Source of the DNA: Dimorphilus gyrociliatus
Taxonomy: Eukaryota; Animalia; Annelida
Length of the DNA: 64,000 bases
Assembly (NCBI GenBank): GCA_904063045.1
Contig: CAJFCJ010000002.1
Location: 1,262,422 to 1,326,421, forward strand
Direction of reading: 5' to 3'
The translations under genes and the position numbers were made by a program. Position 1 is the first letter of the stretch; every line of letters begins with the position of its first letter. Positions 4,262-15,898 of the stretch are shown here, one piece after another. The notes beneath the pieces were generated by a model. It worked only from the letters and a program-made list of their open reading frames with translations. It searched no databases and was not told where the DNA came from.

Positions 4262-4736
4262 ATGTCTCAAAACAATACAATGGTAAATTATGCGAATTTA
4301 GTCCATTGCAAAACAAAAGCCTTCTAAACTCTTGCAGAATGAAATAAAACCATTCGACTATGCCGAAAAACTAAAGGAATGTTCCATTATGGAAGCCGAA
4401 TTGAACGATATTATGGATCAAGTTCGAAATCATACAAGTAAATGTTTTGTTTAATATTATTTTACAGATAAACTAATTATAACTTTATCAGAAAGTAATA
4501 TAGATGTTCAACTTCGGATTGCAAATATAAACACTACAACAATTGCATCTGGCTATAAACTTTTAGATGTTGTTGGTAAACTTGACGAAGAATATGGGCA
4601 TGTAAATGACTTACAAAAGCAGATTTTGAAAACTATGCATTCGTATGAAGGCGAGATGAAGAAAGTTCAAGAAAATCTATTAAAACGCATGGAAAAGCCT
4701 ATGGCTGTTTTAGAGGGCGAAACGGAGGAGTCATAA
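4262..4736 (+). CDS. Small coiled-coil protein, possibly BORCS6/lyspersin-like; 3 exons; absent from the ORF track
   Basis: Exons 4262-4282, 4338-4437, 4468-4736 join in frame (~129 aa). IASGYKLLDVVGKLDEEYGHVNDLQKQI fits my recollection of the BORCS6 C-terminal pattern. Family call unverified. Confidence 0.55.
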
Positions 4737-6770
4737 CATAGCGCCATCTGTAGGGACAATGTTTATTTTTTGTTCTCATCTCCGTTAATAAATCATCAGA
4801 CGCTTTAAAACAGATATACAAATTTAATGTAATAACCCTGAATGGCTTCCTCGAAAAACTAATAATTCAGCTGATAATAATGTAACGCCATCTAGGTGGT
4901 ATGCACTTACGACTGCAAATTGATAAATTCAATACGTATCTCGGGCTTTATTTAATCAGTTGGCAACACAGCGTATAGGGAGAATTGCGGTGTTGCAGTT
5001 GGACAATGCAGCATGGCGTTTGTCGCACTAGCTTCCCAGATTAAATTTGCATTTGCTATGTGAGGCCGCATATCAATGCAGTATAGCGCAAATAAGTGTT
5101 GTATTCGACGCCAATTTTTCACACGCAAAAGCGAACGATTCTGAAATTTCTATTGTGTTTAGTTTTTTTCTACGTTGTATAGAACTAGATTTGAATAATG
5201 TACATGGCGTTAAGTCCCACTGATCGACCACCAGTTCAATAAGAGTGCGTTCATATTGTGCAGACGCCGCATCCATCACCATTAGCCTATTCCCGACTGG
5301 GACGTTTGTTGTCATAGCGACCCGTCCCGAACTGCTCTCTGCTGTAGTAGCATTGCGTTAGGAGAAAAAAAGACAAAATATCGTGACTCAGACGGTGCGC
5401 CTGATCAAAGACGCAATCAATCTGAACGCATTCATAAAATTGCAGTAGCGCAAGTTGCGCACTAACGCTTATACACGCCACGTTCTCGTTTTCTCCAGTA
5501 ATACAGCATTGATTTTGTACTTCCAATAGCAGAAGCTATCGATTCACTTTGTACTAGGCAAAAATTCGTTCCTCCTAGCTTTTTTACTGCCTTAATTAAT
5601 GAACACCTGTAATAGACGGACATTCGATATCGGCCTGGGAATGGCAGCAATTGAAAGAAAGCGAACCGCAAAGATTGATTACAATTCTTAAGCGTGTGGT
5701 CTGAAGGAAATAAGCAATTACAGTGGCGAATATATTCCCAATTGCTGCCGACAAGAAAACTGCATCTAGGCTAAAACAAAGAAGGCGGTAGTTAAACGCG
5801 AGTAAACATTTTGCAGTTGGGTATACGATCAATCAATCTAACGTTTGTACGTAGGCTACCATAACGGCGCTCTTCGCCAGCTGTACCCCATAGCTGCAAT
5901 AAAGGTTAGTGAGATGTTGCGAGAATGTCAACGTTCGACGATGATTAGACTCTCTGTATTCGAATTTCGAGTATATATGTTAAAACTACATAAAAACACA
6001 ACAATGTCGAGATCATTGCTGCAGTAAACTGTACAATTTTATTTCGTAGCTCAATGAGCACGCTAAGCAACGAGCATTCTATATCGAACATATAAATTAA
6101 TTGATTTATAAAATTAAAGAGAAAGATGCTTCGAATGCGCGTTGCCAGGCATACAATTCCCACATATACACATATATAGAGACAGCAGCGCGGAATCACA
6201 GTTTGGGTAGGCGGCAGCAGTCCGTTGAGTATTCGATGGAATGTTCGTTGCAAAATCGATGCTTGTGGAAGAACGTCGAAAAGGCTGCGCTGTGCGAGAA
6301 CGAAGCACACAAGAACTAAACCTTAAAACTGAAAACCGGCCACTGACTCGCACGACGAATTCGAATTTATAAGTTAAGGCAATAATCATAAAATAAACAA
6401 GAGAAAAAACAAACAAATATACTGGCAGTTAAACACACACAACGTTGACTAGTAAGGGGGAGGGCAAAATCGTAACGAGTCTGAATTAATAAAGAAAAAC
6501 GAAGCAAAAAACGCAAAGCGTGAGACAACGAGAGCAGATAATACAAATCCTAATAAATTTCACAACGAAAGACCGGCAAAAAACAAACAAGCACGAAATG
6601 ATTTCAGTGCTGTGCGAATACACAACTAAAACGACGAATATAGTCTTTAAATAGATACGTCTTATAAATAGAAAGCGAGAGAGATAGAGAGGGCCAGAGA
6701 GCAGGATAGGGACAAAGAGAGCGAGATATAAAGAAGACGAAAAAATGAGGCTGAAGAAAAAAAACTTGCG

Positions 6771-8182
<1,412 letters not shown>

Positions 8183-10023
8183 CTACATTTTAGCTTAATG
8201 TTCGATTTGTATGCGACACACTCTGATCAACGCTAACATCAAGCTTTGTACGTCACTATCGTCGAGACGCTGCATTGGGGCGTCCAGCGTCGATATGTAA
8301 ATGAGGTTGCGCGTCAACGTTGACTTTCTATATTGCCTGCAATCAACTTCCTATTTTTCCCTAAAATTGCCCATTTCTTCAATTTCTTTAAAAACAAGCT
8401 TCTTAGCAATTTTCCCCCCTTGAAATAAGAAATATTTCTAATACGTAGGTAATAAAACATGCACCACAACGTACATATTCTTGTACCAGTAGTTTCCATG
8501 GTTACGCTATGTACCCTTGCTCAGCGCACTCTACTTTGTATATAAATGCATGCAGTTTGTCATTTCTGCGAGATGCTTTTTGTGTTGTAGAAGAGATGGG
8601 ATTTTATAAATTATTGCCAAAAAAAATTAATAATTACATACCCATTGACGTTCATTGTTATAGTAGTCCATTCTGCCTTCAAGCTGCAAAAAGAAGATAG
8701 TTTGAATAAAATGTAATATTATAGGGCAGTTATGTAACCAACACAATAAACATTTGGAGACAAGAATATAAGAATGACATTGTGTGTAAGAGTAATAAAA
8801 AGTATACAGATGGAAATCCCCGATATAATAGATACCTGTATATACACATGAAAAAATAAACACCAGGCCTATCAAGCAATCACCTTAATGAGTAGTTTTT
8901 TAATGAAAAAAACGCCATTATCACAACGCCGCCGCCTGCCAGAAAGGACGCTTCCTTTTTTTATCGAGTAACAACACGCCCACGGTAGCTTATCTTATCG
9001 GCAGCCAACTGCAAAATGCCTCTTATTTCAATTACCTTAGTAGTGCAGTAGCACAAGAACTAGACTATAGAAAACCTCAAGTATGTAGGCCTAGCCAATG
9101 GTTAGAACATATCAAAAATAGTCATATAGCAGTTTTATACTTGTATATAGGGTAAATCGAAGAGTACTTTCACCCGTTAGAATTTTATGATTGAGATGTC
9201 TTTCTATATGGGAGTTTTTTGCAAAGAGAACCGGACGAAACAGCAATAATGCATGAAAGAATTCTCGATACATAAAGAAAATGCTTACCTCGAAATATAT
9301 AATTAAAAAATCGGCTTTCTAGTATCGAGCAAATAATAAATCGAGAGAACGATGTAAAAAAGATACCAAAGCCAAATTTTCTTCTAAATTTCTTCCAAGT
9401 GAATATCGTAGAATATTGACTCGGTGCACAAAATTGACAATCAGTTTGCAATCGAACCGAAGATGAGAGTAGACTAAATAAAAGTGTACATAAACAAATA
9501 AACAAACGAAAGAAAAGAGTGAAGAGGAAGGCAGAAAATTCGTCAAACTGCAATATGCCCTTCCTCTCTCTACGCGTTCGTTTTGCAACCAAAAGGAAAA
9601 ATAGCGCGCAAGAACGTTCCTACAGTTTGCCAATACTCCACTTATCATTAAAACTCTCTTAAAAGGACGATACGTACATTAATATTTTATTAATATTACA
9701 ATTAATAATAAGCAAATATTTTTATTTTTAAAATCCGATCAATTAGCGCTAAAATTAGGCCAAATTGCTAGGAACTATTTTTCTGGGCGTAGTGTTATTT
9801 CTAGGAAGAGATAAGTGGACGTTATGCGTCCTCATGTAGGAATTAAAATTCGATTTTATTGAGTAGAACAGTATTCTTTGGTTGGCGACTTGAAATGATA
9901 TTGTTGATTTTAATTACATCAGCCATTTGAAGTTATTTTTTTGGAGTAACAAAAACTCAAATTACTATAAATCGACTATAAAACTATTGACAGCTGACTG
10001 GTGGGCATTGTGGGCCATTGAAT

Positions 10024-13000
10024 ATGGCGGATAAAAACGAATCTGGTAAATTTTTATTTGTTTAATGTCGTATTTTCTCATAAGCCTACAAAATATTCTC
10101 CTCTTTCGCTAACATAATTTTACACAATCATATTAAGCGAATCGATCAGTATCCTTGACAACAGTTTACAGTCTATATTAAAAGAGATGTTTAAGAAATT
10201 GTTATTTCTCTGCGTTATCGCTCACCGCGTGTTTTCGTTTCTTTGGTAACTGATGTAACCGATCGGATGAATGTATTATTTAGAGATAGTTGACATTCAA
10301 TCCCTATTCAATGATTTCAAGTATTTTATTTACGATAATTAAGAATTGTTGTCATGTTTTAAATGGTGAATAGTGACGTTATTTGGTTTGTAAACTGAGA
10401 AGAATTCGATAATTATTGGTTTAAAACTACGTTGCTATTAGGCAAACCGACCATAATATGTTGATATATGCACTCTACTTAAAAGTCTTGCTTCAGGCAG
10501 CGAATCCGAAAGTCAGGAAGAAACAGTCGTAGGCAATCTGCAAAAGTTTGCAGTCACACCCCCAGGATACACAGGAAAACCGAAAAAAGGACATTTGGTA
10601 TTTAACGCATATTTCGAGTCAGGTAGAACAATCTGTTCCTCTATTAGGTCTATCCTATAAATATATATTACTATAGGAAATCTCGGGAGAGTCGATTACA
10701 TCAGCGATATAGAGTATGATCTATTCATCCGTCCTGATACATATAGCCCTCGATTCAGGGTTTGGTTTTACTTTACAGTGGAAAACGTAAAAGCAGATCA
10801 AGTATAACAATACTTGCATAGTATCATTGCAACATTTACATTATATACTATCTTTCAGAGGGTCGTCTTTAACATAGTTAATTTCTCTAAAACAAAATCA
10901 CTCTACAGAGATGGTATGTCACCAGTTGTAATGTCAACTAGCCGACCTAAATGGTAATGGCTTTTCGTTCTTTTCTTTTTCATTCGCACTAAATGTGGTT
11001 ATCTTCGCTTTAATTGAATACAATTATAAAATTAGGGTAAGGATTCCAGCGAAACAAGTTTACTATTATCGATGCCCGGATCATAGGAAAAATTACGTTC
11101 TATCCGTAACTTTTATGTTTGATAAAGAAGACGATGTTTATCATTTTGCATACTGCTATCCTTATGATTATACTCGTCTGCAAAACTATTTGGATGCAGT
11201 AGAACGTAAAAACTACAATTTCTTCAAACGCGAACTGCTTTGTCTGACTGTAGTAAGTAGAAAAGAATTTTTCTCTGAAATGATATACTAAGCCTATAAT
11301 AATTTATATATCGTTGGCACTAAATAGCAAGAGAGACGGGTGGATATTTTAACCATTACTCATCCACGAAATGTCCCGAAAAATGACCAGGAGAAGAAGA
11401 AGGTTATTTTCATAACAGCAAGAATTCATCCAGGCGAAACACCGTCATCCTTCGTCTGCCAAGGTTATTGGCATATAATCTTATAATATGCTCTTATATG
11501 CTGCAACGTCTCTTCTACATTGTTGCAGGTGTTATTGATTTTCTTGTCTCCAGTCATCCAATAGCGAAGAGTCTCCGGGAGCATTTAATATTTAGAATTG
11601 TACCCATGTTAAACCCCGATGGAGTGTATTTGGGAAATTATAGGTGAGCGGATTACACAACTTTTATAATACGCCCAATTGACTAGTTTGAATAGGAGTT
11701 CGTTGCGTAAATAGGTGCTAATTTTCTTGTAAGATTCGATCGAATTATTTCTCCTTAAGTTCGTTTTGCGTAAACACTGAGAACGCTCGAACAATAAAGC
11801 AACTGAGTGACCCATTTAATGATTTTGAAAGATCGAAGTAAATTAGAAAAATGATTATGAACGTATAAAGGAATAAAAACGACGCAAAGCCAGTATTAAA
11901 TCGGGACGCATATTTGCATAGTAAATAAAATAACGACGTCTCAACGCGGTATTATTGCATTACGAGCGTGGAAAAGTATTGCGTATGCGAAGCTGTCGTT
12001 CGTATATCATAAGATAAATATTGGTAAAAATTGCATGCGTTTTCTTTGTTTAGCCGAAAACGGCGATCTGTCATCGTAATGAGACGTCTGTTATGTTAAT
12101 CTTTTGTATCTTAGATGCTCTCTGATGGGTTTCGATTTGAATCGTCATTGGCAAGAACCGTCACCGTGGGCCCAACCCGCTCTTTATGCGACCAAGAATT
12201 TACTTATGAGTTATGACCAAGATAATAACATTGATTTGGATTTCTACATTGATATCCATGCCCATTCTACCCTTATGAGTGGTTTTATGTATGGAAACAC
12301 ATACGACGATGTTTCGAGATGTGAACGACAAGCTATATTCCCCAAACTTCTTTGTCAAAATGCCGAAGATTTCTCAATTCAGAACACAAATTTCAATCGT
12401 GACGCAATGAAGGCAGGGACTGGCAGGCGGTAAGTAGATTTTATAAGAAACTTACCACGTTCGAATAGATGAGACTGGGTAGTACGGGAGTAGTTGGCAT
12501 TTGTAAGGCTGGAGAGGACAGGGTGCTTTGTAGAGTCTGTATAGGTCGAACTGCTGCTGCTGCTGCCCCGTACACGCTGTTCGCGATCTGTAGTTTATAT
12601 ACGTAAACGAACGCGATATTTATTTACTTATCTTTTCCTCATCACCTTTCGACGCCCGAACGAAACCCCCGCGCCATCTCTCGCCAATTATGAACGAGAG
12701 GGTCTATGAATATCAATGCACGGTATCCATGCATTATGGATTAGGCGATTCGTCTGAGTTTTTCTCTTTTTCTTTCTTTCTATTTACAACTATATACAGC
12801 TTACTATATTATTGATGAGCATTGTTTTGTTTGCCACGAGCCTATTCGAGTGTATCGAATGTGTATGAACAAGAACGCGCCAACGGTTATATATATTTGA
12901 AAAAAAAATACCAAGTACAAGCGCATTTTTTCGCCTTATTTACTCACGGTCTAGTCTTTTTTTTGTACACGTCTTTTATCTTCCCTTGTAGCATTAATAG

Positions 13001-14040
13001 ATTTTCGCTTTGACGAGGCGATTCAGCGGCCAAGTGTATTTCGTTGTAGCAGTTGGCGAGATTGCGTGAAGATTAAACGATAAGCCATAAAGTGTGCTGG
13101 ACAAGATTTGCTCTCGATTCTTTCCAATGTTTATATTTGACTGTAGTGGTGCAGGTCGCCACTTTCTCTATTTCGCTCTTTTCATTCACCCTCTTCCTTT
13201 CTAGTCCCATCGATTTTACAGTATACGTAAAGAGAATAATTGTTCTCTGGAGTGCGTTGGCGTTGATACTTGCAGAGCTGAGATTCTCGACCGACTACTC
13301 TTAATTAGCCGTCGAGTTTGCCTTCTTCCCACCGCCAGCAAAAACTGCATGCAGCATTGATTGACTCACAGCTGTTGCTGCTGCCAAACTCTGAAAAAAA
13401 AAAGTAGTTCTTGTATATAAATATACCACTATATACAATTTTATAAGAAAATACTGACTTATAATATATAGATATACATCTGTAAGTATGACTTGTGTAA
13501 TATTATATATATATATATATGTATATATATACAGTATATACATTTGTCTATATTTATAAAAAGTCTATATATATATTAGTATATATATATAAGTCAGTAT
13601 GCGTAAAATGCCATATGGGGATATATACTGCACATGTTTCATTTTTAGATAGACGTTTCAACTCTTGGCTGCTAGAGTTTCGATTTAGACATTAATTATT
13701 ACCGGCATTAAAAGCCAATTTAGTCGCCGATGACTATCGGTTGACCTTTTTCAGACCGGTTGTGATATTTGAAGTTTGTTGCTTTGCTTTTTTCGTAGTC
13801 AGAGTCGAAAGCGCTTGGCCAAATTCATCAAGATCTTTGGGCTATATGCGCAGTATATAATACATTATACAATATATACCCTATGGTATATTCATTATTG
13901 TATAAATGTAAACGTCTATATTGACCATTGATCATACTGCTTAGCTTAGCAGACCTAAAACCGAGCTTAACTAATTGAACTAAATTGTAAACACTATTAA
14001 TGTATGTAAATATAAAAATAATAATAAATAAATAGAGAGC

Positions 14041-14082
<42 letters not shown>

Positions 14083-15898
14083 TGGAGGCAAGAGTGCCCG
14101 CACTGCAAAAAGTCGAACGAGTTCAAGTGAATCGACTTTGTATAATATGCATATATACGCGAAACATGTTGCTTTTGTAAATACGTCATCTGGCCGAGAA
14201 ATCGTCGAATATTTGCAGGCGTTCTGAGGTTAACAACTTCGTTTTCTTTCTTGTTTTTAAATTATTGTTTTTGGTTTTCTTTTTTAAAAAATAGGGAAAT
14301 AAAAAAAAAAAGAAAAACCTTTTATAGACTTTACCATATAGAAACGACGTTGTCTTACTCGGATTTCTAGAAAAAAGGAAAAAAAGAAAACCGGATATAT
14401 TCGAAAGGGCCAACGACCCGCATCGAATAGGATTAAACGGTTTTCTTTTAGGTTATAGCTAAGAGAAAGTAGAATCCAATCCAAAGAAATATACTAGAGT
14501 TTGTCTTCCCCCAGTTATATATCTTTCGTTTGATTGGTTTTGTATTTAAAATTAAATAATTAAATGAAAAAAGCGTTAGAAAGAAAAAAGATGAATAAAA
14601 AAAAATAATAAAATAAACAAAATATATCACCTTGTTTAGTTAAACTTGAGTAGAACGCTAAACGACAACGTCGATATGGAAGAATGTTTGACAAAACAAC
14701 TCAAAAACAAAACGCTTCATAAGCCAAATTAAAACGAGCTTAGTAGTTGCCGTTTTTTTTTCAACATGATATTATACTGCACGCAATATATCACTATGCA
14801 GAAGAAAAAAGTATAATAATTGTATATAGAAGATAATAAATGTTCAAACTGAAAACGGTAAAAAAAATTATTAATGGAACGTGAAGGTGAAAAATTAACG
14901 GTTTTATATTTAAATAGAAACATATATATAAACATATATTTATATATATATTTACTAAAAGAATATATATATATATATAAAGAGATGATAATAGTAATGA
15001 TAATAATGATAATAATAATAATAATAATAGATAACAAAATGTTCAAGTTAAAAAAATACAAGACATATAATATCATTTTGGTTGGTCGTGGCAAACAAAA
15101 AAATGAAGAAGAGATTCCCCCCCAAAATAATAACGTAAATAAATATCATGCATATATATTGCAATTGCTAAAGTAATAAAATTATAGTATAGTTGAAAGG
15201 CTTCATTTATTTATATATTTAGAAAGAAAGCATGCTGATAAAAACATTTTTTCCCTTTTTGTCGTTCGGGCGATAATGATTTTGGCTAGAACAAACCTGT
15301 AAATGAGCTGGCGTTAGCTTGCAAGCGGGCGGCACTTTAGGCATGGTGCGAATCGCAGAACGATCCGACGCGGAATGGCGCCGTTCAATAGACCCGCCGT
15401 TCTACTCCGATCGATAGAGTTTGTCTCGATTGTTTGCTATACTCCTTTTTCTCCCTTTCGCCGTGTGAAAGATGAGAAAAGTCAGACCGGTACATACGAT
15501 TGATGACTCTGACGAGAAATTCGAACTAGGCCCGGTTTTTTAGCACTGGCGCCGTTCCTAGAAAAAAAGTAGTTCTTGCGGCTGGCGTTGCAAGAGAGTT
15601 TTGCTTGGCAACCGTTTGACTGCAAATCGCTAACGCCATCTGTTGCAGAACTTTGGGAGGTATTTTGGATGAAAATTCCTACTGCTATACCCTGGAAGTT
15701 TCGTTCTATAGCTACACTCCTGCAAATTCGTCAACCTTACAACCCATTCCTTATACTGAAGACGCCTATCAGAAGCTTGGAAGAAATGTTGTTCGCACTT
15801 TTATTGATTACTACAAGTCAACAGGATACATTCCGACTAAACCTAGTAGTGGTTTGACGCCAAGTGATGAATTAAATTCAAGGTACAGATTGAATTAG
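10024..15898 (+). CDS. AGBL4: Cytosolic carboxypeptidase 6 (tubulin deglutamylase), multi-exon
   Basis: ATG at 10024 (MADKNES). Motifs FESGNLGRV, ARIHPGETP, NPDGVYLGNYRCSL, DLNRHW, IDIHAHS, YTLEVSFY; zinc ligands and catalytic Glu present. Large intron 12430-15648. Confidence 0.95.
12456..12587 (-). CDS. Candidate upstream ELAV coding exon nested antisense in an AGBL4 intron
   Basis: ctacag|132 nt|gtaagt, phase 0-0, no stop: IANSVYGAAAAAVRPIQTLQSTLSSPALQMPTTPVLPSLIYSNV. Phase is compatible with the ELAV acceptor at 8092. Confidence 0.6.
13370..13390 (-). CDS. Candidate 21-nt microexon (SLAAATA)
   Basis: Poly-T tract plus cag|AGTTTGGCAGCAGCAACAGCT|gtgagt, phase 0-0. Confidence 0.45.

Follow-up and report, generated by a model that had tools for sequence, protein, structure and literature searches.

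A stretch of 132 nucleotides (nt) on the minus strand of the annelid Dimorphilus gyrociliatus genome, located inside the gene AGBL4 and upstream of the oppositely oriented gene ELAV, changes between species in a protein-coding-like manner and is for that reason probably an unrecognised upstream exon of ELAV. The window analyzed here, 64,000 nt in length, comprises positions 1,262,422-1,326,421 of contig C2 in an assembly of 77.9 Mb; it has 33% G+C and its genes are very compact. Window positions are used throughout and convert to contig coordinates by the addition of 1,262,421, with the stretch (12456-12587) at C2 1,274,877-1,275,008 and the 5' end of ELAV exon 2 (8092) at 1,270,513. The stretch probably forms the 3' coding portion of an upstream exon of ELAV, and to the fuller claim that it is genuine ELAV exon sequence extending the N-terminus of the protein we give about an even chance. 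From the genomic sequence we infer that it is transcribed and joined to ELAV exon 2, and likewise where the exon begins and where translation starts.

The initial annotation had drawn attention to a stop-free minus-strand frame at this site, and its description of the letters was accurate. Translation of 12587-12456 gives a 44-residue peptide rich in Ala, Pro, Ser and Thr, with ctacag before it (AG at 12589-12588) and GTAAGT after it (12455-12450). The plus-strand donor of AGBL4, also GTAAGT, lies at 12430-12435, with the two donor G's 25 nt apart, and the ELAV exon that begins at 8092 does have the phase-0 acceptor attributed to it (ttttcag), followed by ISPEP and then MTMETTNG. The absence of stops is in itself little evidence and not above chance, because all three minus-strand frames of the window are open over these 132 nt (53% G+C) and frames of this kind are common: 1598 open frames of 44-90 codons are found in 264 kb of the genome, making one of 44 codons commonplace. 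What rises above chance is the cross-species conservation of the stretch, the codon-periodic pattern of its substitutions and the strength of its donor. The peptide-coding stretch occurs only once in the 77.9-Mb genome, and an origin from a repeat or transposon was rejected on account of this single copy.

Conservation was assessed against a 12.9-kb Logan contig (SRR23372228) from a sister species. This contig was found by a search with ELAV exon 2, which returned a 99%-identical open reading frame (ORF) on it. It aligns to window positions 13460-1505 at about 87% identity overall and ends near 13,940; all interspecies values given here refer to this one species pair. Ordinary intron DNA of the two species is 53-80% identical with many gaps. 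The adjacent AGBL4 exon differs at 11% of its sites, and third codon positions differ by 32% in that exon and by 22% in ELAV exon 2. The stretch is 94% identical and gap-free, and it forms part of a block of about 1 kb (12386-13400) that stands above even the AGBL4 and ELAV coding exons in conservation (Table 1). Outside the 132 nt, this block differs at 1.0-2.2% of sites and is without codon periodicity.

Within the stretch, the differences from the sister species are distributed as expected of coding sequence. Six of the eight fall at codon position 3, two at position 1 and none at position 2, and the changed codons in the predicted frame comprise five synonymous and two non-synonymous ones (Leu to Ile, Ser to Pro). 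When eight neutral substitutions were simulated with the local non-coding spectrum, two or fewer non-synonymous changes with no stop arose with a probability of 0.009, and six or more changes at position 3 with a probability of 0.014. Third positions change at a rate of 13.6%, six times that of the conserved flanks (2.2%; Fisher P = 0.0012), and for positions 1 and 2 together the rate is 2.3%, the level of the flanks. Such periodicity was sought in six other conserved blocks and none of them shows it. When the 5.8-kb alignment was scanned blind for 132-nt windows that lack gaps, stay open in the two species and have at least 70% synonymous changes, the AGBL4 exons, ELAV exon 2 and 12456-12587 came back, and nothing else. 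A second minus-strand frame is also open in both species, so that a frame kept open is a weak criterion alone. The frames other than the predicted one look non-coding. The plus-strand ORF at 12469-12606, which shares third positions with the stretch, was rejected because it has a stop in the sister species and four synonymous against four non-synonymous changes. The coding reading of the initial annotation is thus upheld in that a coding-type pattern is present in exactly its frame, but the acceptor that it proposed, at ctacag, scores like a random AG.

To evaluate the donor, splice-site weight matrices were built from 77 introns inferred in this genome. The donor at 12455 is among the strongest by the measure of true donors (Table 1), and a score this high is reached by just 0.07% of background GT sites. 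The last codon of the stretch is complete, and exon 2 opens in phase 0, five codons before its ATG, a match with a chance of about 1/4, and the one difference from the sister species within ISPEP is synonymous. In the blind alignment scan, no minus-strand coding-like window appeared between 12455 and 8092, and no conserved, open, in-frame cassette exon was found between 12455 and 8093. A cassette at 8683-8642, the only one there with good splice sites, was rejected as it is poorly conserved.

These features suggest a model in which the 132-nt stretch would be transcribed from the minus strand as the coding 3' end of an alternative upstream ELAV exon, hosted by the final intron, an unusually long one, of AGBL4 on the opposite strand. 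The donor at 12455 would splice past six AGBL4 coding exons to the phase-0 acceptor of exon 2 at 8093, and the frame would continue through ISPEP into the usual start, MTMETTNG. The product would be an ELAV isoform with a low-complexity, Ala/Pro/Ser/Thr-rich N-terminal extension. The exon could begin at the acceptor at 12588 or, if it is 935 nt long, at the acceptor at 13390; translation might start in the ACCATG exon at 15344, at the ATG of codon 30 or at a non-AUG codon.

A number of observations weigh against this model. The coding statistics rest on eight substitutions in one pairwise comparison, and codon usage is uninformative (score 1.0, where coding frames average 2.7 and other open frames -3.6, with a standard deviation of about 5; likelihood ratio about 1.4). 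Third positions in the stretch change two to three times less than in the neighbouring exons, which implies that another constraint overlaps. The ctacag acceptor is at the level of a random AG, with 60% of background AG sites scoring as well. An in-frame TAA at 12626-12624 limits the unspliced frame, and there is no in-frame ATG before codon 30 of the stretch. Three synonymous changes lie upstream of that ATG, so that a start further up is required, for which there is no confident candidate; the same three changes argue that translation enters from an upstream exon. The peptide is also without detectable relatives: its 44 residues gave no match in a phmmer search of 1.84 billion representative proteins, in a word search among short proteins (24-77 aa) or in a Pfam search, and the 60-codon open frame gave none in a scan of metagenome contigs. 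A short, lineage-specific, disordered segment need not have relatives, and an exact look-up of ten ORFs from the conserved blocks and ELAV exons found none of them in the collection. Finally, a direct junction from 12455 to 8093 implies a 4.4-kb intron that holds at least six AGBL4 coding exons (10457-12429) and is about 65 times the median of this genome, and conserved exon-like blocks at 9658-9289, 9067-8836 and 8581-8465 lie in between, inclusion of which would put stops in frame. The median itself is 66 nt by our estimate from 77 introns inferred in 264 kb of the assembly, equal to the published 66 bp for D. gyrociliatus, and introns with regulatory content are much longer than this (PMC7854359).

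With regard to the 5' edge, the acceptor matrix is noisy, and the genuine acceptor of ELAV exon 2 scores low too. Other AG sites are found at 12577 and within a (CAG)5 run. The best acceptor in 5.4 kb precedes position 13390; background AG sites reach its score of 9.31 in 0.08% of cases, and it is located exactly at the 5' edge of the ultraconserved block, where conservation begins. Two architectures can be drawn from these sites. In the first, 12587-12456 would be an internal exon, perhaps with a micro-exon at 13390-13370 before it; in the second, a single 935-nt exon would extend from 13390 to 12456 and only its last part would be read, an arrangement that fits as the first does. The micro-exon has a single difference from the sister species (TTG to CTG), which is synonymous.

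Three ATG exons in the conserved block that could supply a start were tried and rejected. That at 12994-12947 has a frameshift in the sister species; that at 12734-12645, which would leave a 68-nt intron, has second-position changes and an altered donor; and that at 13210-13190 has a weak donor and two non-synonymous changes. The candidate first coding exon with ACCATG at 15344 has a donor at 15296 that scores 7.39 (90th percentile of true donors, 0.6% of background), and the segments 15344-15297, 13390-13370 (optional), 12587-12456 and exon 2 are all open and in frame. This exon falls within the most CpG-dense 200 nt of the window and beyond the region covered by the sister-species contig. 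It is a lead and not a result, since about one such candidate is expected by chance.

The surroundings of this exon, 15250-15650, form the most CpG-dense, GC-rich island of the 64-kb window, situated at the 3' end of the last AGBL4 intron, and in sequence the island resembles a promoter with the first exon of a transcript from the minus strand. Were the 132-nt stretch itself a first exon, the TATA-like motif TATATAAA would be a possible core promoter, as a motif that is common in the AT-rich DNA here. A second TATA-like motif, noted as a motif only, is found at 13423-13414. These elements can be assembled into a fuller picture of interleaved ELAV and AGBL4 genes, one that we regard as speculative and quite improbable. 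It would place a promoter near 15.3-15.5 kb in the last AGBL4 intron and have about 70 residues, rich in Ala and Pro, contributed by the small phase-0 exons 15344-15297, 13390-13370 and 12587-12456. Between the latter two exons, an ultraconserved intron of 0.8 kb would serve as a regulated switch, perhaps by being retained or through control by ELAV itself, and shared exons and introns would have kept the two genes adjacent since the bilaterian ancestor.

Among the alternatives, the one that survives best, although we consider it unlikely, is that the stretch is non-coding. It would then be the end of an ultraconserved ELAV leader exon in the 5' untranslated region (UTR), perhaps the 935 nt from 13390 to the 12455 donor, or a cis-regulatory block in the AGBL4 intron, and its open frame and third-position bias would be due to chance. 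This would explain why the conservation takes in the whole 1-kb block rather than the 132 nt alone, with flanks even more conserved than the stretch, and why the block is bounded precisely by the strongest acceptor (13390) and donor (12455) of the region. The three open minus-strand frames, the failure to find a usable upstream ATG and the lack of homologues for the peptide all agree with it, and highly conserved UTRs and many leader exons are features of ELAV/Hu genes (PMC3708524); the 3' region of ELAV in this genome is likewise about 90% conserved over 3 kb. The flanks at 12588-13400 and five other blocks do behave as non-coding elements, being conserved above synonymous sites, with differences of 1-2% and no periodicity. 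The 132 nt depart from this pattern, as the periodic excess of synonymous change is significant in a frame specified beforehand (P about 0.01; P = 0.0012 relative to the flank), is absent from the six other conserved blocks and was picked out by a blind scan that gave no false positive elsewhere.

The other conserved blocks bear on the second alternative, in which the stretch is translated but not fused to ELAV. Blocks that are 96-100% identical to the sister species are also located at 11895-12159, 9278-9658, 8849-9067, 8445-8581 and 8148-8317. This array spans from ELAV exon 2 to the AGBL4 introns, and several of its members end in strong, conserved minus-strand donors (9288, 8835), the latter with a score of 6.97. 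The blocks that end at 9288 and 8835 look like non-coding leader exons, and the first of these, 9289-9658, is a probable non-coding ELAV leader exon judged by its donor and its conservation. A 109-codon ORF with an ATG lies wholly within this block (9319-9648, minus strand); it is not coding, because a 2-nt indel in the sister species breaks its frame. Likewise, the proposal that 8275-8222 is a second candidate first exon holds only in part: a short ORF is present, but a coding role is disfavoured by a weak donor and by its sole, non-synonymous difference (D to N). One synonymous and five non-synonymous changes fall in the wider open window that surrounds it, and the segment is more likely to be regulatory or untranslated. 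The array as a whole may represent a series of ELAV leader exons or regulatory elements and may be the reason for the linkage of ELAV with AGBL4.

If such intermediate exon-like blocks were included through their strong donors at 9288 and 8835, they could break the frame before exon 2 is reached. On this reading the stretch would be either a small ORF upstream in an ELAV leader of some length, or an exon that belongs to an antisense transcript of its own or to a small gene nested in AGBL4. We hold this to be distinctly unlikely. The unspliced frame of the stretch ends four codons past 12456, and joining the ACCATG exon at 15344 to an exon from 13390 produces a 45-codon ORF that terminates at 13301, both of which are compatible with an unfused product. 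Against it, the interval from 12455 to 8092 offers no other coding-like window on the minus strand and no conserved open cassette exon in frame, and the strong donor, with a phase that matches the open ISPEP codons, is most simply explained by direct joining to exon 2. The last alternative, that neutral intron DNA happens to hold an open frame between splice-like sites, draws on the frequency of such frames and of AG...GT flanks but is extremely improbable and in effect excluded, because the block at 12386-13400 stands far above the gapped, poorly conserved introns around it.

Table 1. Positions of the features discussed, in window coordinates. Splice-site scores are from the weight matrices, with percentiles among true sites; a slash marks an exon-intron boundary and conservation refers to the sister species.
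Feature	Position	Strand	Remarks
Reported stretch, 44 open codons	12456..12587	-	Coding-type substitutions; no indels and no stop in either species
5' splice site GTG/GTAAGT	12450..12455	-	Score 8.61, 99th percentile of donors; identical in sister species
Proposed acceptor ctacag (doubtful)	12588..12593	-	Score 1.35, 6th percentile of acceptors
Sole in-frame ATG, codon 30	12498..12500	-	Conserved; first ATG for 140 nt on the minus strand
In-frame stop TAA	12624..12626	-	13 codons before 12587; frame open for 60 codons
TATA-like motif TATATAAA	12594..12601	-	Precedes a pyrimidine-purine step near 12571 by about 30 nt
Ultraconserved block, single copy	12386..13400	-	96-100% identical, exceeding the coding exons of AGBL4 and ELAV
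Best acceptor in 5.4 kb, T10 then CAG (exon start 13390)	13391..13402	-	Score 9.31, 95th percentile of acceptors
Candidate micro-exon SLAAATA, 21 nt, phase 0-0	13370..13390	-	Donor GCT/GTGAGT weak: 2.72, 12th percentile
Candidate first coding exon, ACCATG, 16 codons	15297..15344	-	Donor CAG/GTTTGT at 15296, phase 0
Second ultraconserved block	9289..9658	-	Donor GAG/GTAAGC (9288), score 8.12; conservation falls directly after
Second candidate first exon	8222..8275	-	Conserved; donor AGA/GTGTGT scores 2.03, 5th percentile
ELAV exon 2	7757..8092	-	ttttcag, phase-0 acceptor, ISPEP, ATG at 8077-8075 (MTMETTNG), RRM1
Other ELAV coding exons (RRM2, hinge, RRM3)	6774..7615; exons down to 6771	-	
AGBL4 exon and donor GTAAGT (12430-12435)	12104..12435	+	Faces the minus-strand donor; 35/37 differences at third codon positions
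Last AGBL4 coding exon	15653..15898	+	Intron 12430-15652 (3.2 kb) hosts the conserved block

The two genes concerned are readily identified. The minus-strand gene encodes an ELAV/Hu protein with three RRMs and is the sole close ELAV orthologue in the genome. A divergent ELAV-like paralogue is present at another locus, L024 (G000:C20:1286560-1289781, ORF 1696-2388 and upstream), with an RRM1 that is 46% identical; its three RRM matches all lie in one 297-codon open frame, which makes it intron-poor, unlike the ELAV gene of the window. About 2.3 kb on the 3' side of the ELAV stop codon (4490-6770) shares about 90% identity with the sister species, far beyond what introns show, which suggests a long and highly constrained ELAV 3' UTR. 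AGBL4, which encodes cytosolic carboxypeptidase 6 (CCP6), occupies the plus strand with coding exons from about 10457 to 12429 and a last one at 15653-15898. A protein search with its exon adjacent to the stretch returned distant CCP6 proteins alone and no close species. The next upstream gene on the minus strand starts beyond 20 kb.

The facing donors of the two genes (12429-12456) form a 7-bp inverted repeat (GGTAAGT ... ACTTACC), the pairing of which could mask the AGBL4 5' splice site. The predicted hairpin between them on the AGBL4 pre-mRNA is weak (-8.5 kcal/mol, z = -1.2) and not significant. The ultraconserved block is flanked by TA-rich, low-complexity DNA with 12-19% G+C (13400-13650, 14800-15100), which gives rise to spurious miRNA-family matches and long Tyr/Ile-rich ORFs, and an Rfam scan of 8-16 kb returned TA-repeat noise alone.

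The proposed exon would belong to known kinds of arrangement, namely the alternative 5' exons that ELAV/Hu genes possess and interleaved genes on opposite strands. For vertebrate HuD (ELAVL4), eight variants of exon 1 are described that all join to exon 2 and mostly carry an in-frame ATG (PMC3708524, Bronicki and Jasmin review). The resemblance lies in upstream exons far 5' of the other coding exons, each with a donor joined to the 5' end of an exon 2 that has its own internal start, and in the possibility that most of the exon-1 variants add alternative N-termini; among our protein matches, vertebrate ELAVL4 isoforms differ just upstream of IISTME. As in HuD, exon 2 of the worm opens a few residues before the conserved ME..NG motif and is preceded by conserved, donor-terminated blocks. 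The proposed worm exon differs from those of HuD in that it would add tens of residues and not a few, lies within and antisense to AGBL4 and has no sequence similarity to any vertebrate exon 1.

A second parallel had been drawn with the Ala/Gln-rich head of Drosophila ELAV, and it holds for composition, both being low-complexity, Ala-rich N-termini ahead of RRM1. Because the peptide is without detectable relatives and gives no alignment, the likeness is compositional only. The Drosophila sequence is an Ala/Gln-rich auxiliary region, some invertebrate ELAV-like proteins have Ala/Gln-rich N-termini, and the invertebrate ELAV fragments P0023, P0035 and P0073 also carry low-complexity, Ala-rich heads. 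In Drosophila and these invertebrates, however, the low-complexity part lies between the start and RRM1 in the main coding exon and not in a separate upstream exon.

The third parallel is with genomic regulatory blocks and nested antisense genes, as conserved non-coding DNA of the developmental regulator ELAV, and possibly exons too, resides in the introns of its unrelated neighbour AGBL4. The linkage of the two genes is seen from annelid to human, where we take ELAVL4 and AGBL4 to be head-to-head neighbours. Unlike in plain regulatory blocks, part of the conserved DNA in the worm has a coding signature and splice sites, and the tie between the genes may thus be exonic and not a matter of enhancers alone.

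ELAV/Hu proteins are master post-transcriptional regulators of neurons, and many alternative first exons of the vertebrate genes are known, the roles of which are not understood. Should a published RNA-based annotation already contain the isoform, the present finding would be an ordinary detail of a gene model. With its single ELAV gene, its genome of 78 Mb and its 66-bp introns, this spiralian would provide a compact system for the study of alternative ELAV N-termini and leaders, a value that hinges on its keeping both the array of ultraconserved, donor-terminated blocks and the one block with a coding signature inside the neighbouring gene. Ultimately, it would show whether the sharing of exons, beyond the sharing of enhancers, underlies the ancient linkage of ELAV and AGBL4.

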